A DNA stretch of 62,862 nt, counting the filler, from Trichosphaerium sp. ATCC 40318 (lineage: Eukaryota > Protista > Tubulinea), in assembly GCA_038496445.1 (NCBI GenBank). It is 4 parts of 4 records of this genome, joined end to end, with 100 filler letters (N's around TTAATTAATTAA, not from the genome) between each part and the next. Parts side by side here need not be neighbours in the genome. Positions count along the whole stretch, not along the records: positions 1 to 20,654 come from JALMLS010000203.1; 3 more parts are not named here. One strand, written 5' to 3'. Shown piece after piece: positions 12,541 to 20,654 of the stretch. Positions within the stretch are counted from its first letter, which is position 1, and every line of letters starts with the position of its first letter. The translations under genes were made by a program, and so were the position numbers. Under the pieces are notes generated by a model. That model did no database searches and had not been told where the DNA came from. It saw only the letters and a program-made list of their open reading frames with translations.

Positions 12541-15500
12541 TTACACCAAGAGGTTGTTATTGTTTCTACGTTTGATTGTTTCGAGTTGGCAACCATAACA
12601 TTTGCAAATGTCTTTATGTTCGAGTAAATGCCATATGTCAGCATCAAACTTTTCAATAACTCCTCCTTCAGGGTGGTCTTTAGAGTCATTGTACTCGATT
12701 TCATATTCATCCTTTCTTTTAGAATACTTGAGAACAGTTCCTGGATACCAGTCTTCTGCTTCAGTCCAAAAAACAGATACAGTATCTCCGATTTTGACTA
12801 ACGGATTTCCTGTGCTAGCACCAACTGCTACAACGGCATCACTGTCAAACTCTACTGCTTGCTTCGCAATCTTTTTAGTGTTCATTTTAGTAGCTTTACG
12901 TGGCTTTAATCGAGAAGAAATTGGACTAACAAAGTCATTAAACAATCAGTGGATATTGTTAGTACCTTTGAATGGTTGATTTTTGTTTTTTTGGCTTGAT
13001 TACTTTTACACGTTTCTTTAGTTGTAGTTTTTTGCCGGCACGTTTCTTTGGTTGTAGTTTTTTGCCAGCACGTTGTAGTTTTGCTTCTCTTCTTATTCTT
13101 TTTTTATCCTAAATTCGTCTTAACAAAATCATAGTAGTTGATTGTTAACGCACCTCAGCTAATGCCTTGGGAATGTTACCTTGTCCTGGCATGTTTTGCC
13201 TTAAAACATGTGGTGTTCGTTGTATTGGAAAGTTGTTTGGTGAACTATCTGAGGTGAGATCTATTAATATTGGCTTTCGTGTTGTTTTTGGCTTTGTGTT
13301 GGACTTATTAATATCTTGGTGGCGTCTTTGAAAAGAAGCAGGAGTTGAATGCATGAAAGGCGTTGCATCGATAGAAACTTCATTATCAACGTCCATCAAA
13401 TTATCCACCTCAGCTAAGTCTCTGGCAATTTTGGCAACATGATCGTCATCAAACTTTGTATCACAACTTAAAACAACTTTGTTAGAATCAATTACATTGT
13501 CACAAAAAAAATAAAAATACAGTACCTCGCATCGTCAACGTTGTTAACACTGTAAATTTTAGCATCATCTATTACATTAGTAGTATTGTCATCTATTGCT
13601 TTGTTGGCAACATTATTGTCGTTGAACAATTCATTCAAATTGGTTTGTGGTTTGTCCATCGTATATGTTCCTCTTTCTCTAAATTCTTTTCTTTTTTGTA
13701 GCAAGTTTTTATACCAAGGATATGTAGACACTAAAAACCCATGCCATACCTTTGCCGTTTGATTTCTAAACTTAATAAATCACAAAGAACTATAATTAAA
13801 TATTTACCGACAAAGATCAAACACATATTGGTCCCAGAAATCCAATTTTGGCATACTCAACTCTTCAGGATATATAAAACCTTCAGAAGTATTCTCACAA
13901 GTATTCTCAGAAGTATTGATAGAGCTATTATTTTCAAGAGAACGAGTAGGTGATGTAAACACTTGTAGGCTTTTGGATTGTTTTATAGGAGTAGGAGACT
14001 TCAATCGTTCAAAAGCACTATTATTATTGTAAGATTTACAATATAGAAAATGTTTGTACTTACGTATCACCAAAATTGCCATCGTTTGCAAGCCTTTTTT
14101 TTAATTCTATGTTTTGGACCACATTCATCAAATACTTTGTTGTAGGTAAAGGCATACCGTCACTTATGTCAATGGAATCTGCAGAGCTAACAAAGAATTG
14201 GGGGGGAAAAAAAAAGAAAGGTACATACGTATCACATTCGTTTGAGTCTGCTCCATTATCTGAAACTTGTAAAGCATCTCTATCGTTGGTTTTATTCTCA
14301 CCTTCTTTTTCATCATTGTAATCAACAGCAACATTGTGTAAGTCATTGTTTTCTGTTGCCAACACTGGACGGTTTTTATACACAGGAACATTTGAAGTTT
14401 TGCATTTGTTTTCATAATTTTGACGCCAGTGATCTAGCAGTTTTTGAGCGTCTTGTTCTTTACCTACTCTAACAAGTAGTCGTGATTGGTTGTGGTAATC
14501 GTGGTGTGTTGTGCTTCTATTAGCTAGAAATATTATTAGAAATGAACACAAATATTCAGCACGTACATTGTACAGCTTTAAAAACGTTGTAAAATTGAAA
14601 CTCTTCTAATAATTCGACCAGCTTATCCGTTCTACACTGTATTCCTGTCTTTAAAAAAGCTGGTTAGAAAATATTAAATGCATAGCACGTACTCCAGCAC
14701 AACTATCTTTAAATCTTTTATTGTTGCCTTCAGATCTATTATTAGTTCTGTTTTCCATGTATTCTTCGTCATCAATTACACTGTAAGCAGACCAAAGTTC
14801 AGGAGGGTGTGTAGCCGTTTTTGAAACCCAAGTTTTATACAAGTATGCCATATAAGTGGCCTTTTTTTGCCAATTTTTTTTTTTTTTTTTCAATTCGGAT
14901 ACCTAAAAAATGTCAGCACTAATTTGAGTACATCTGTGTACCTCTTGTTTTGCAAGGTTCCATATTTCAACAAATAACTCTCTGCTTTGAGCGTCTAAAA
15001 GCAACATGCTAAAATTACGACACCAAAGCATATCAGATGTTGACAATTTTAATTTCTTTCGTTTTTCTTTGTGTGCTTTAGCAACGTGAAACTTGCATAA
15101 AGTGACTTGTATATCTGGAAATAGCTCTAATAGGGCATATCTGTAAAGTAAATACAAATTAGTATGTGTCAACAGATTTAGTATCCAATGGTACCTTAAA
15201 TTCAATTCACAATCCACAACAATTCTGTCGAATTTTTTGAAATTTTTGTTGACCAACGCAACGCATGCATATCTGTACTCCTCCAATGTTTTCCCTAACA
15301 TCAATGCATAGCCCACTTTAACGGTGTCTTTGTCACATATACTCCAAAAGAACAACAACTTAATAAAAAGTTAAACAACGTACTAAATTGGGTTTAGAAA
15401 TATTGTTACGTACGTGTCCTTTAAAGTCTGCCATGTTGTGTACTCCGTCAAGAAATAATGTTTTACGTAGCAAGTATTTTTTGTTTTTATTTGTCAAAAC

Positions 15501-16387
15501 CTCTTCATTAAATTTAGAAATCACAAACGGCTTCAAACAAATGTTGATTTCGGGATATTTTGCTCTGATTGTACTAAGCACTCCCAAGTCGCTGTATGGG
15601 GACTCTTTTTTAAGTTTGCGCGCCACAGCTCGAATTTGGTCTACTCTAGGTGTAATAGAACTATTTGCCAAAGTTAAAAGCGTTTTGTCACTATTTTTAA
15701 CCATGTTTAACGCCTAACAAACAAAAAGTTTAGTTATACAAATAGATTTTAATTTATTGTAGCATGACCAACCACATTTGAACGCACCACTAATTCAGGA
15801 GTTTTACCACTTAAAAGGTAATCTCGTACTTTGCGTTTTGTGGACTCGCTAAGTCTAAAATCAATGCTGTTTTGAGGTAAACAATTTGGAGCGTGTTTTT
15901 CTGTGTTGCGAATTGAAACTATTGTTCCACGTGCATCAATCGCAAAGTTCACTTTAGCTGTAATGAATATCAACAACAGTTATTGTATTATACAACAAAA
16001 CAAACGTACCGGAGCAGTTAGAAACTATCGTACATTTACAATACACTCTAGTTGCTATATCATTGTTGTTGATGTCATTGACGTCATTGTTGTTGACATT
16101 TTTGTTGTTGGCATCAATTTTTGTCCGGCCACCTTTGGTATTTCTATTTGCACTAATTACTAACAGTGCGCTACAACGCTACAAGCTACAACGCTACAAA
16201 ATGTAGGTGGATTTGGTACGTACTTTTTGTTGATATGTTTCCTTTTGTTCACTGTCCATTGACAACCGTATTGTGTGCCGTGAGCAAAAGTTATGGGACG
16301 ATCAAACAAATCACGCCAAAACAATGTTGTAGTGTCTGTATCACTGTGTGAGTTGGGTCCATTGGTTACATAACCTTTTTTTGCCAT
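12541..16387 (-). CDS. Mutator-like (MULE) DDE transposase with N-terminal zinc finger and C-terminal Tudor-like domain; intron-rich
   Basis: FLDGVH (D), VVDCE (D), CKFH (CxxH), RTNNRSEG (E); CKC..NC...KHAPNC zinc finger; downstream exons splice in frame to IGDTVSVFW..EDWYPGTVLKY...YEIEYND. Confidence 0.8.
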
Positions 16388-16516
16388 AAGAATTAATACA
16401 TAACGTGTAATGTAATTTAGATACAACAAGAATTTATTATTTAAGTCGTTAACAGTCTTTGTGAGCTTTTTTTACCAAGATTAATATTTAGTCTAAAAAT
16501 ATTAATTTAAGCCATA

Positions 16517-18200
16517 TTAAATATGTGAACGCACATTGGGATACAACTGTGCCATGACTTCATCCACTTTTTTCCTAAGTTCTACGCCCAATGCTACAAT
16601 TTCAATTTCTTGTAAAAGACCAAAAGGATTTTGAACAGGAGGTGTAGCAAACACAATACAGTAATGAGTTTGTCCGTTACACAATTTAGGCCAATGGATT
16701 ACACACCAATGTATGTCTATAGCCGCTTTTTGTTTTTGAATCTACAAATAGTGAGTAGAACGTTTAACAATAACAATACGGAAACTAAGTACTCTTTTGA
16801 ATATTGTCCACGGATAATCTTCGTGTTGGCCTGGCAAGTGTACAAAATATGCGCTATCCAAGTTACAAATCATAACATGAGGCTCCAATTCAATTATTCT
16901 ATGACGGCCCAACAAAGAAAATCGTTCAGCAGTGTATTTTTTGGATGTAACTAACCTTATTAAAATGTACAAACCTCATTTTTGGACGTACTTTTCCATT
17001 TTTTCTTTAATGCTAATATTTCTGGAGTAAACATTTTTTTGGCAGCCTTTGCAGCTGGAGTATTCTTGCTACCAAATCCTCCTCCACCCCAATGTGGTGC
17101 AGTTGCATAAGAACAAAGTAGATCTACATGTAAACACGTATGTTTCATTCCGACTTTTCCATAATAGCTGCAATTTAGACTATCTAACACTAAACTAACC
17201 TTGCTATAGTAATAATGGCCAAACAAATCGTGCCAAAGTTTTTTAAAGGTTTTTTCTGGATGTTCGGCTACCAAGCTCAACATCTAAATAATAGTGAATG
17301 ATAACGCAACGTACAATAATAGTGCGTACTGGTTTAAAATAATTATGTGCCAAATTAATCATGTGTTTTGACTCCTCAACAGATACAACGCCGTCCATAA
17401 ATAAATCATCATCACTACATAAGATATTGTCTCTAAAAGACCCATTGTATCCAACTGAAATTATTTGCAACGTAGAATTTCTAAACTCAAATTAGTTTGA
17501 CACATTTTGACACATTTTAACTTGTTAGTACTTATATGCCTTGTAATCGCCATATCCATATGTACAAATGGGATAATGTTTGTCGAACATTACAGCATCA
17601 GCTATTTTATCGCCTCTGGGGTTTTGGTCAATCAAAGAAGTTTCAGGAGGATATGTCAATGACATGTTACGACGTAAATAAACGGCCATCTGCAAATGTG
17701 CCTAAAAAATATAATTGGAATGTAGAAATAACATTAAAATCCGTGTACCCAACGCAAAAAGTCACGTTTTCCAGTTTTAGCACTTTTAGTTTTCCTCGTC
17801 TTATAATCAGCGTCATTAGCATATAAGTTGCTAAATAATACTATTATGGCAAGGAAAAACAATCCATCAAGACAAAACTGGGTACCAATATAACCATTTA
17901 TATTTTAGCTCCAAATACGTTATTTGTTTTTTTGTAAAAAAATGACAAGCCACTGGATGCTTTCTCCAAAGTAATTGGTTGTTCTACAAGATAATAATTA
18001 AGGTGCTATTAATTATATAAAACAAAGTAGATACCAAGTTTCTAAGAACCAGACGTTTATTAGCATCAGATAAAGTGTCAAAAAAAGTGTCAACCTCTTC
18101 ATCTGTTTTATCGTCAAAAATATGTAACAGTTCATACTTTCTATAATCTATCTTCTTTTTAGACGATGGATTTGAACTAGGATTCAATAAGAAACCAAGA
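16517..18200 (-). CDS. Orphan multi-exon protein upstream of the MULE transposase (start uncertain)
   Basis: Chain of ORF pieces separated by short GT-AG introns, ending ...AQLYPNVRSHI*. Confidence 0.5.
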
Positions 18201-18249
18201 CTGAGATAGAAATTATGCAAGGTAAAAAAATAAATTACAAACAACTACT

Positions 18250-18690
18250 AAGCTCAAAATCGATGTTAATGCTTTCTTTGGTATCCAAAGTAAGCTCACT
18301 AACACATTAAGATAATCAAAATGCAGTTGTGATCAGTAGAAAATGAGCAAAGTAAGCTGTAATACAAAAACGAACAATCAAAAATAAAAGTAGAAAAAAT
18401 ACAACCAAAACCATTACTTATAAGCTCAAACAACGTTAATGCTTTCTTTGGTATCCAAAGTAAGCTCACTAACACATTAAGATAATCAAAATGCAGTTGT
18501 GATCAGTTGTATAAGCTGTATAAGGAAGAAGTTGTAGTACAAAAGTGGTACGATAGTCAAAAATAAAATTAGAAAAAGTACAACCAAAGCCATTACTTGC
18601 AAGCTCAAACAACGTTAATGCTTCCTTTGGTATCCAAAGTAGGCTCACTAACACATTAAGATAATCAAAATGAGGTTGTGATCAGTTGTA
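18250..18690. repeat. Tandem repeat, ~172-179-bp unit, about 2.5 copies
   Basis: aagctcaaa...gttaatgctttctttggtatccaaagtaagctcactaacacattaagataatcaaaatg recurs at ~18250, 18422, 18601. Confidence 0.9.
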
Positions 18691-18803
18691 AGAGCTAAGA
18701 AAGCAATATCAATTGAACGACAAATATTTTATTATATAGTTGCTCGTACGTTTCAGAACTACACGTTTCAGAACTACATGTTAAAGGTTTGCCTACAACG
18801 TAA

Positions 18804-19861
18804 TTATTCAGGACTGTGTGGAGTAACCCAACGGAATGGTAAATCACCAAGATGCATTTGAATCAAATATCTGATATACGAAGCTGTTTTAGGACCTAGC
18901 TGATCCAGGTGGGGATACAATTGATGATAACTCAAAAGAAATTTGAGCATACTAAGTAAAATATTAGCAAAAAAAAATAAAATAAAAAAATTAAACGTAC
19001 TGTATTTCCCACGGAGAGAACAAGGTTTTCACCAACAGCTCGTAATCTACGTTGTCCATAATTTCATGGTTTTCCACAACGTAATCAAAATATGCATCTC
19101 CAAAGTCCTTTAATAACATACCTCTAACTTCCATGGCTTCAGATAACTAAATAATTATTTAACACAAAAAACCTTCATTGATACGTACCTTATCAGCAAC
19201 AGTACGAATGATTGGATGTTTTAGAGCCTTTCTATAGTCTCTATCATACCTTATTGGAGAAGGAGGAGGAGACATTCTGGTAGGTGGCTTGTAAGGCGAG
19301 TTGATTTTACCTCCAACTTTGGTAGGAGACAAATCTACATTGCCTTTTAAAGCTGAAGCATAAGACCCAGGTTTGGTCTTACACTCCTTAACTCCACAAG
19401 CTAATAGGAGTAAATAATGTGTAAAAAAAAAAATTCAAAAAAAAAAATAAATACCTTCGTATAACGGTTTCGTTGGGTATGTTATGGGCCCTTTTTGCAA
19501 TGCCAAAGGAGTTCCTACATTGTGTGAGTATACGCTCATTTAGAAACAAGAAAAAAAAGAATCAAAAAAAAAAATTGTGATTTCTTAGTAAATCATTTTC
19601 AACGTTACGTGTTGGTGTTTTTGGACTTTTGGTTGGACTTCCTGTCGGTGTTGTAGATATCACGCCGGATGCGTTAAAGCGTATAATGGAAGGATCTAGG
19701 AAAAAAAAACCACAAATTAGCTCAGAAAATTAACAACGCATACCTGGAGAGTAATCACCGTCATCATCGCGTAATTTAATCTTTTTATGCTCTGGGCTTA
19801 GCTATTTTGGTTAATGTTTGGTAATTAGACTCTTAGCGGTACGTACGTTAGTTCTACGCAT
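18804..19861 (-). CDS. Orphan multi-exon Ser/Pro/Thr-rich protein (many SP/TP sites)
   Basis: MRRTN|LSPEHKKIK..., TPTGSPTKSPKTPT, SPYKPPTRMSPPPSP, ends WVTPHSPE*; canonical short introns. Confidence 0.55.
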
Positions 19862-20654
19862 TGTTAATTGTTTTCTAGTGGGAATAAGCTAAATAAGCCG
19901 GCAAGGAAGGAATAGATCATGAGATTTAAAATATATGGCGTACCTGTTGCCTACGTGTATTGTTTCAAACTTAATAAATGACCTTGTCTTGACTTTTCAC
20001 AAGATCGCATTAGACGGTCAATTTATTATTTGTCTCACTAAACAACTACGAAATAGGCTTATTATTACGTACTTGGAAGGGCTACGCGACTGTGGGCAAG
20101 ATCTACTGTGGGCAAGATCACGTTCGCTATAGCGAACTCACTCAGTTCTCACCCATAATATTATTTGTGACTAATACGTTTGATACAGGAAGGAGCTTGG
20201 CATGCCAACAATTTTATCCGTCATAAAGAACAACAAAGTCGTACGTACTCTAAAAGTAATTAACAGACGCTTAATATGCTCCTGAGCGGTCTCTCGTCAG
20301 AAAACCTACAAAACGACAGTAATTATTCACAAAATTATACTATAGTAGCGTCTTCACATCTCTTGTGAGAGCATACACCGCACCTGACAATTTTATTTTC
20401 CGTCTGTTATTTCATCAATTTATCTGTAGACTTACGCTTCAAACAGGTAACAACGGGCGACGGACAAGTCACTGCTGGAAGCGTAGTAGTGAAGGGTACT
20501 GCCAGAAAAGTAAGACACGTTCAAAATAATGAAATTATTATTGGCATGGCTGGTACGGTACCATTTGATACCTTGAATAACGTACGTTCCTTTGTTATTG
20601 GATTGGAGACTATGCTGTCGTTGTAGTTTGTTAAAACTTATTTAGTCGCTCAAA

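Follow-up and report, generated by a model that had tools for sequence, protein, structure and literature searches.

The landing site of a transposon decides the extent of the damage or of the regulatory novelty that it causes, and retroelements solve this landing-site problem with reader domains such as chromodomains. The locus described here raises the question of whether a DNA transposon carries a reader domain of its own. It was found in a stretch of 62,862 nucleotides (hereafter the window) from the protist Trichosphaerium sp. ATCC 40318, of which positions 1–20654 are an entire contig, C487, with about 35% G+C, from a source assembly of 70 Mb in 642 contigs. On the minus strand of this contig, between 16387 and 12541, an original prediction had placed a Mutator-like element (MULE) transposase fused to a C-terminal Tudor-like domain. 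Such a fusion is the best gene model that can be built from the DNA. We lean, with modest confidence, towards a two-gene transposon whose transposase combines a zinc-finger-like module, a DDE core, a linker and a Tudor domain of the PDS5C/RDM15 type, and whose insertion would be tethered by this Tudor domain. Three sister loci serve for comparison: a copy that is about 99% identical (C212), a diverged paralog (C362), and a 3' remnant (C269).

Continuity of the reading frame

Genes in the contig are eukaryotic in style, with short GT-AG introns whose donor is often GTACGT. The transposase-Tudor gene (16387..12541, minus strand) is modelled with 15 exons and 14 GT-AG introns of 39–74 nt, amounting to 3159 nt and 1052 codons. 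It starts with an ATG at 16387 and ends with a stop at 12543–12541; the phases sum, and there is no internal stop. The exons, all on the minus strand, lie at 16387–16224 (E1), 16170–16010 (E2), 15957–15788 (E3), 15713–15414 (E4), 15358–15195 (E5), 15140–14942 (E6), 14902–14693 (E7), 14648–14567 (E8), 14523–14229 (E9), 14186–14064 (E10), 14017–13808 (E11), 13765–13526 (E12), 13466–13154 (E13), 13108–12966 (E14), and 12925–12541 (E15). Donors were fixed by coordinate, and a script listed all acceptors that keep the frame open. The nearest frame-keeping acceptor works at every donor; for E2, other acceptors put the start at 16152 or 16143. All six junctions quoted in the original prediction (VQ|S, GDT|A, LCR|N, DAS|C, LAE|D, and IQS|P) proved to be canonical GT...AG introns of 40–59 nt that restore the frame, and eight further introns upstream of these six complete the model.

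As a control for chance, we sought the open path that spends the fewest nucleotides on introns, for the real strand, the opposite strand, the reversed sequence and 20 shuffles. On the real strand, the best path has 12 introns with a total of 529 nt. The corresponding figures are 21 introns and 1143 nt for the opposite strand, and 32 introns and 1692 nt for the reversed sequence. Of the 20 shuffles, 10 have no path at all, and none of the others stays open with fewer than 29 introns or less than 1713 intronic nt.

The same gene structure is found in the diverged paralog. By tblastn, C362 matches all 15 exons in collinear order, with 63% protein identity over E5–E6 and about 68% identity at the DNA level. 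For E3–E7, the matches stop where the exons are predicted to end; between them lie intron-sized gaps (50–66 nt) without sequence similarity to the window introns. Exon ends and intron positions are therefore common to the two loci, while the intron sequence has diverged. Codon-position identity between them was set aside as circular, the alignment having been selected on the protein sequence. The ATG of the transposase is kept in C362, with stops just upstream of it there. E9–E13 match at E 1e-4 to 1e-9, and E14 only at E 0.21. In C362, the counterpart of E13 forms one open exon, 508 codons long, which ends at the same conserved exon end, that is, at the last short intron before a basic patch; patch and Tudor exon follow as one open frame of 131 codons. 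The first residues of E15 are identical in the window, in C362 and in C269, which indicates that the last acceptor site is conserved. Since all 15 exons recur in order in C362, together with the start codon and the Tudor exon, a chance joining of exons is argued against. The earlier claim of a frame running uninterrupted from the transposase into a C-terminal Tudor domain is thus upheld, and this architecture is shared with the diverged paralog.

What weighs against the fusion is that it is a gene model drawn from genomic sequence. Two genes could be present instead: the transposase would end shortly after the catalytic glutamate, and linker and Tudor domain would form a separate accessory gene with its own start. 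In maize MuDR, mudrB is indeed separate from mudrA. The junctions from E7 to E15 are predicted ones, E15 contains internal methionines, and the element already has a separate accessory gene, ORF1, upstream of the transposase (several exons, 16520..17701, minus strand). However, no stop, non-coding gap or promoter-sized spacer is found between E7 and E15, where the largest gap is 59 nt; all phases add up, and C362 has the same continuity, including its 508-codon exon. ORF1 and the transposase, by contrast, are read as separate genes because the stop of ORF1 (16519–16517), about 130 nt and the conserved transposase ATG, preceded by stops in C362, intervene between them. Two separate genes are therefore considered unlikely, and the fusion is retained as the best model.

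Domains of the predicted transposase

Family scans, searches and fold predictions for this gene were run exon by exon. The catalytic D, D, CxxH and E that the original prediction had announced can all be read directly in the joined exons. The predicted DDE core (14729..15449, minus strand, in E4–E7) contains D254 (15449–15447), D314 (15214–15212), C335xxH338 (15097–15086) and E444 (14731–14729). The spacing is D-60-D-21-CxxH and D-130-E, with E444 located within an RTNNxSEGNN motif. Members of the Mutator superfamily are expected to show a D-~60-D spacing, a C/DxxH about 21 residues after the second D, and the E in TNNxxExxN. The core thus displays a DDE triad of Mutator-type spacing, a CxxH after the second D, and an E in a motif of the TNNxxExxN type. 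Besides the family of the window, three other transposase families of the genome show these conserved catalytic motifs, four in all. N-terminal to the core, a C-x-C ... H-x3-C pattern across the E2/E3 junction marks a putative zinc-chelating DNA-binding module (15881..16040, minus strand). The pattern block is conserved in C362; the exon-wise scan gave no Pfam match for it. The putative module resembles the WRKY-GCM1/FLYWCH fingers described for MULE transposases (PMC1702500).

The element shares with the MULE/MuDR superfamily and its IS256 relatives the DDE spacing, the CxxH, the glutamate within TNNxxExxN and a putative N-terminal zinc-chelating module. It also resembles Mutator-like elements in its great length, in its accessory gene and, in the C362 paralog, in the size of a candidate target duplication (about 8 nt). 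It differs from them in that it fails the Pfam MULE model and has no SWIM finger, and in that its ends form at best a 29-nt imperfect inverted repeat, in C362 only; MULEs without inverted repeats are known. The best 30 named ESM-Atlas clusters all carry PF10551, with scores of 0.91–0.95, these being language-model neighbours found without an alignment.

Several search results speak against the assignment. The best PF10551 match has E 0.004 and 18 bits (cut-off 27.6) and covers 21 residues around the CxxH. No PF10551 match was obtained on single exons, nor genome-wide at E<=1; as the DDE domain is distributed among three exons, scores for this family are lowered in any exon-wise scan. With Pfam and NCBIfam, no transposase match was found on single exons or on longer open frames of related families. 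An all-library HMMER search of 1.8 billion representative proteins with the E5–E6 piece recovered no relatives, its sole match, a spurious repetitive protein, being rejected. Word-based searches with the Tudor exon and with the transposase alignment likewise recovered no relatives, and a metagenome scan yielded none either. Of the MULE label, then, the motifs and the Mutator-like spacing hold, whereas the PF10551 threshold is reached neither on any exon nor genome-wide. Membership in the Mutator-like superfamily, for which motifs, spacing and language-model neighbours speak, is probable but unproven.

The core is followed by a low-complexity linker of about 440 residues (12966..14523, minus strand, E9–E14), through which the frame is kept and which is predicted to be disordered. 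It ends in a lysine/arginine-rich patch (E14, 13108–12966) containing a 30-nt tandem repeat (13009–13074). In C362, the exon equivalent to E13 is swollen by a proline/serine/arginine-rich tandem repeat. This tandem expansion indicates that the length of the linker is highly plastic, while its ends and the Tudor domain are kept. The C362 linker exon (C362:11673-13196, minus strand) holds about 20 in-frame tandem copies of a 16-residue serine/proline/arginine-rich unit.

The last exon encodes a predicted Tudor barrel (12625..12798, minus strand; protein residues ~968–1025). The best Pfam hits of E15 are four families of the Tudor clan, all sub-threshold. Two of these families, Agenet and PTM_DIR17_Tudor, are both matched by all five genomic homologs of the domain, and a profile of these five homologs finds PDB 7de9_A at E 1.7e-7. 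This structure is the Tudor domain of Arabidopsis RDM15/PDS5C bound to H3K4me1. An AlphaFold model based on a nine-sequence alignment forms a β-barrel with a core pLDDT of 70–85; it was used in place of a single-sequence model of the Tudor exon, which reached a pLDDT of 36 and was discarded. The top 50 Foldseek matches to the model are nearly all Tudor or Agenet domains, and VIA-align superposes it on 7de9_A with Z 6.3 and a root-mean-square deviation of 2.1 Å over 57 of 58 residues. Model, Foldseek, VIA-align and profile thus agree on an SH3-like barrel of five strands that can be superposed on the known structures of Tudor domains. The earlier proposal of a Tudor-like C-terminal domain with aromatic residues is borne out by the Tudor-clan hits, the profile match to 7de9 and the AlphaFold model, and the fold check that went with it returned a Tudor/SH3-like barrel.

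By both sequence and structure, the best match to this domain is the PTM/DIR17-like Tudor of RDM15/PDS5C (PDB 7DE9), although identity is only 23% and RDM15 acts in another context, as a factor of cohesin and RNA-directed DNA methylation (RdDM) and not as a transposase. The candidate cage consists of W (12768–12766), Y (12747–12745) and Y (12693–12691), plus D (12687–12685). Residue mapping shows that W616, Y623, Y641 and D643 of RDM15 are all conserved in the window Tudor, and the five genomic homologs all have W25, W31, Y50 and D52 (numbering of the domain). Other observations count against the reading of this domain as a methyl-lysine-binding Tudor. The Pfam scores stay below their cut-offs (Agenet, E 5e-5 and 24.1 bits against 27; PTM_DIR17_Tudor, 18.7 bits against 27.2), and the Foldseek E-values are 0.07–0.4. 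The Z of 6.3 is tied with unrelated SH3-like barrels, so that the fold alone is not decisive. The position of RDM15 D645, one of the two acids by which that protein selects monomethyl-lysine and a residue needed for H3K4me1 specificity, is occupied by K in the window copy and by E in C362. Given the conservation of the RDM15 cage residues and of D643, a methyl-lysine cage is plausible, whatever the specific mark that it would read.

A further possibility is that the Tudor exon is a fragment of a host gene, captured in the manner of Pack-MULEs and of no use to the element. At C8, C35 and C102 there are host-like genes with a Tudor domain of this type, and the C212 copy tolerates a miniature inverted-repeat transposable element (MITE) in its Tudor exon. 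Yet the exon stays in frame, with an invariant cage, in the C362 subfamily, which shares with the window only 41% identity over the Tudor domain and about 68% at the DNA level. The acceptor site and the first residues of the exon are also conserved, where a passive passenger would have decayed. Passive capture thus seems quite improbable compared with a Tudor domain that belongs to the transposase.

Mobility of the element and proposed role of the reader domain

From comparison with the complete C362 paralog, by which its length was judged, the window appears to contain the 3' two-thirds of a DNA transposon of about 11 kb. The element carries two minus-strand genes, ORF1 and the 1052-residue transposase. 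Its segment 12411–19361 recurs on C212 at 98.5–99% identity with a different 3' flank. The two coding sequences differ by 17 substitutions, of which 13 are non-synonymous and 4 synonymous, with no coding indel; the rate is the same as in the introns, and the substitutions look neutral. In the C212 copy, the Tudor exon is interrupted by a MITE of 929 nt (C212:61829-62757) at the point corresponding to window 12816/12817, seven codons before the barrel. In the style of Tc1/mariner-Stowaway elements, this MITE shows a TA duplication, and its inverted ends match perfectly over at least 16 nt. The 3' end of the element (12411..12540) extends from the stop codon to a terminus at 12411, and its last ~30 nt are conserved between subfamilies. 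Similarity among the window, C212, C362 and C269 ends at the same base, beyond which the four flanks differ. C269 retains a 570-nt 3' remnant of the element.

Evidence for insertion comes from the paralog. The C362 element (C362:11080-22064) is nested in another repeat, three other copies of which are without the element. These empty sites show one T-run where two (T8 and T9) flank the C362 element, a difference of 8 nt. An empty site with a target duplication of about 8 nt is a plausible reading of this comparison, and the size fits the MULE range of 8–11 nt, though the duplicated sequence is a homopolymer. Against this reading, a poly-T duplication could also have arisen by slippage.

The original prediction had left open that the gene could be a domesticated chromatin factor. 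The gene would then be a transposase-derived host gene of the FHY3/FAR1 or MUSTANG kind whose extra copies arose by segmental duplication. In line with this, an inverted copy of the 3' terminal 20-mer was not found on the other side of the element in the window, in C212 (43000–55400) or in C362, and at 19361 the window and C212 copies meet a C42-like repeat at one and the same junction. When the two ends of the C362 element are compared in inverted orientation, 20 of 29 positions agree, including a perfect core of 14 nt. The family has no more than two to three full copies. Against domestication stand the non-synonymous to synonymous ratio of 13:4 at a rate equal to that of introns, the interruption of one copy, and the exact end of the shared unit at a terminus common to four loci, besides the remnant, the nested paralog with its empty site, and the repeat-rich contigs that hold both the window and the C212 copies. 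A single, immobile locus under purifying selection is thus not what was found, and domestication is very improbable. Copies with different flanks, neutral divergence, the MITE-broken copy, the shared terminus, the remnant and the empty site together point to a young, mobile transposon family rather than a domesticated gene. The description of the protein as a DNA-transposon transposase of Mutator-like design is supported.

If the protein is such a transposase, a role for its Tudor domain can be proposed. The N-terminal module and the DDE core would bind and cut the ends of the element. The flexible linker of ~440 residues and its basic patch would serve as a leash that lets the Tudor domain reach a histone tail and dock on a methylated lysine. 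Docking would tether the transposition complex to marked nucleosomes and bias the choice of insertion site, as suggested by the chromodomains of chromoviral integrases, which act likewise. Histone reading, target choice and the evasion of silencing, as envisaged in the original prediction, are functions that we infer from the conservation of cage residues and from analogy.

The Tudor domain could also be fused to the transposase for a purpose other than targeting. It might bind a methylated non-histone partner, retain the protein in the nucleus, or interfere with host silencing. Tudor domains of SMN and TDRD proteins bind methyl-arginine partners. In the fold search, the Tudor domains of SMN, TDRD3 and SGF29 are as close as that of RDM15, and D645 of RDM15 is not kept. 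The substitution pattern between the two closest copies can be read in the same direction: CpG-context transitions account for 24 of the 83 differences, which hints at the element being a target of cytosine methylation. On the other hand, the closest solved relative by sequence is a reader of histone lysine, and the known fusions of reader domains with transposable elements act in targeting. A non-targeting role is accordingly held to be unlikely, and tethered insertion remains the reading towards which we lean. As regards the substitutions themselves, window 12411–19361 differs from C212 at 83 positions; 66 of these differences are transitions, 24 of them in CpG context, while CpG sites make up ~4.5% of positions and the CpG observed/expected ratio is 0.78.

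Enzymes of mobile elements fused to reader domains are already known. The chromodomain of MAGGY was shown to direct integration to H3K9me chromatin, and fusions of Chromo and PHD domains with DNA transposons have been catalogued, such as hAT-Chromo in a sponge. Chromoviruses and these DNA transposons follow the same logic, with a methyl-lysine reader on the integration enzyme. They depart from the window element in the fold of the reader and in the family of the enzyme, and targeting by the window element would be by analogy. In Rehavkus elements, which are related to MULEs and have arthropods and annelids as hosts, the transposase carries a PHD finger. By description, they share with the window element a Mutator-type transposase and a small domain of the histone-reader class, although the reader is a PHD finger in one case and a Tudor domain in the other. 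The closest parallel in domain type is Gypsy-10_Ec32, a long terminal repeat (LTR) retrotransposon of Ectocarpus with a C-terminal Tudor domain, reported in 2025 as, to its authors' knowledge, the first transposable element with a Tudor domain (PMC12477816). As in the window element, the Tudor domain lies at the C-terminus of the integrating enzyme; this enzyme is, however, a retrotransposon integrase from another host lineage, and the two are likened by description only. No Tudor domain is listed among the MULE groups in one survey (PMC6446971), and a full-text literature search returned no paper describing a Tudor domain on a Mutator-like or other DNA transposase.

The genome contains a second Tudor-bearing element, which is Harbinger-like and occurs at three loci (C613:2170-2850, on the minus strand; C14:258983-259665; C5:781614-782111), two of them degraded. 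An upstream DDE_Tnp_4 match scores 25.7 bits, above the cut-off, and a single open frame of 227 codons encodes a SWIM finger (22.5 bits, above the cut-off) followed by a C-terminal PTM/DIR17-like Tudor domain. The fusion of SWIM finger and Tudor domain here needs no splicing model, since the frame is uninterrupted. The Tudor domain of this element retains the full acidic pattern of RDM15, Y-N-D-G-D-R-E. That a second, unrelated transposase of the genome is combined with the same kind of Tudor domain suggests a recurring solution and not an isolated accident. It is tentatively proposed, as a possibility only, that two transposase superfamilies, Mutator-like and Harbinger-like, each acquired a Tudor domain of the PDS5C/RDM15 type, maybe independently, and that both dock on methyl-lysine for site choice. 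If true, these would be the first Tudor-guided DNA transposons, and the Tudor domain would give a DDE enzyme a natural module for chromatin targeting that is programmable. The window family looks young, given its ~99% identical copies and intact frame, and its DDE enzyme and detachable reader on a long linker make a tractable pair. It allows one to ask whether a Tudor domain biases the integration of a DNA transposon, and which mark is read.

Accessory gene, repeats and neighbouring genes

The coding blocks of ORF1 are ~45–69% identical to their counterparts in C362. ORF1 had no Pfam or PDB match, and its relatives were found at five other loci (C165, C412, C448, C41, and C16). Between the two genes, about 70 nt upstream of the transposase ATG, a short non-coding motif (16440–16475, minus strand) is kept in C362; it may be a promoter or a transcription-start element. 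An Rfam scan of the window gave no match.

The 5' part of the element contains about three copies of an internal repeat of ~175 nt (18246..18704), detected as off-diagonal matches of 86–89% identity and also found in C362 (17850–18278). Further 5', a block of 1229 nt (19362..20590) takes the place of 5 nt in C212, and the shared unit resumes at 20591 and continues to the end of the contig. Part of this block (20127–20569) is 92% identical to C12:583813-584253, and the block probably represents a nested repeat. The contig stops short of the 5' end of the window copy.

The terminal 23-mer of the element (12411–12437 region, up to 3 mismatches) has 92 sites genome-wide, compared with 8 for a control. 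Repeats sharing this terminus may be non-autonomous partners of the transposase family. Repeats whose interiors are unrelated have in common an end of ~36 nt that starts with GGGG. In C324, two ends that face each other were considered as a single element, which was rejected as their flanks do not match; they are read as two elements.

The element adjoins an intron-less gene for a MORN_2-repeat protein of 450 residues (10922–12274, minus strand; Pfam E 5e-34). The N-terminal ~45 residues of this protein recur with 76–84% DNA identity at more than 40 loci, which makes it a member of a large gene family. A shorter relative of the MORN_2 protein is located at 4468–5202 in the window.

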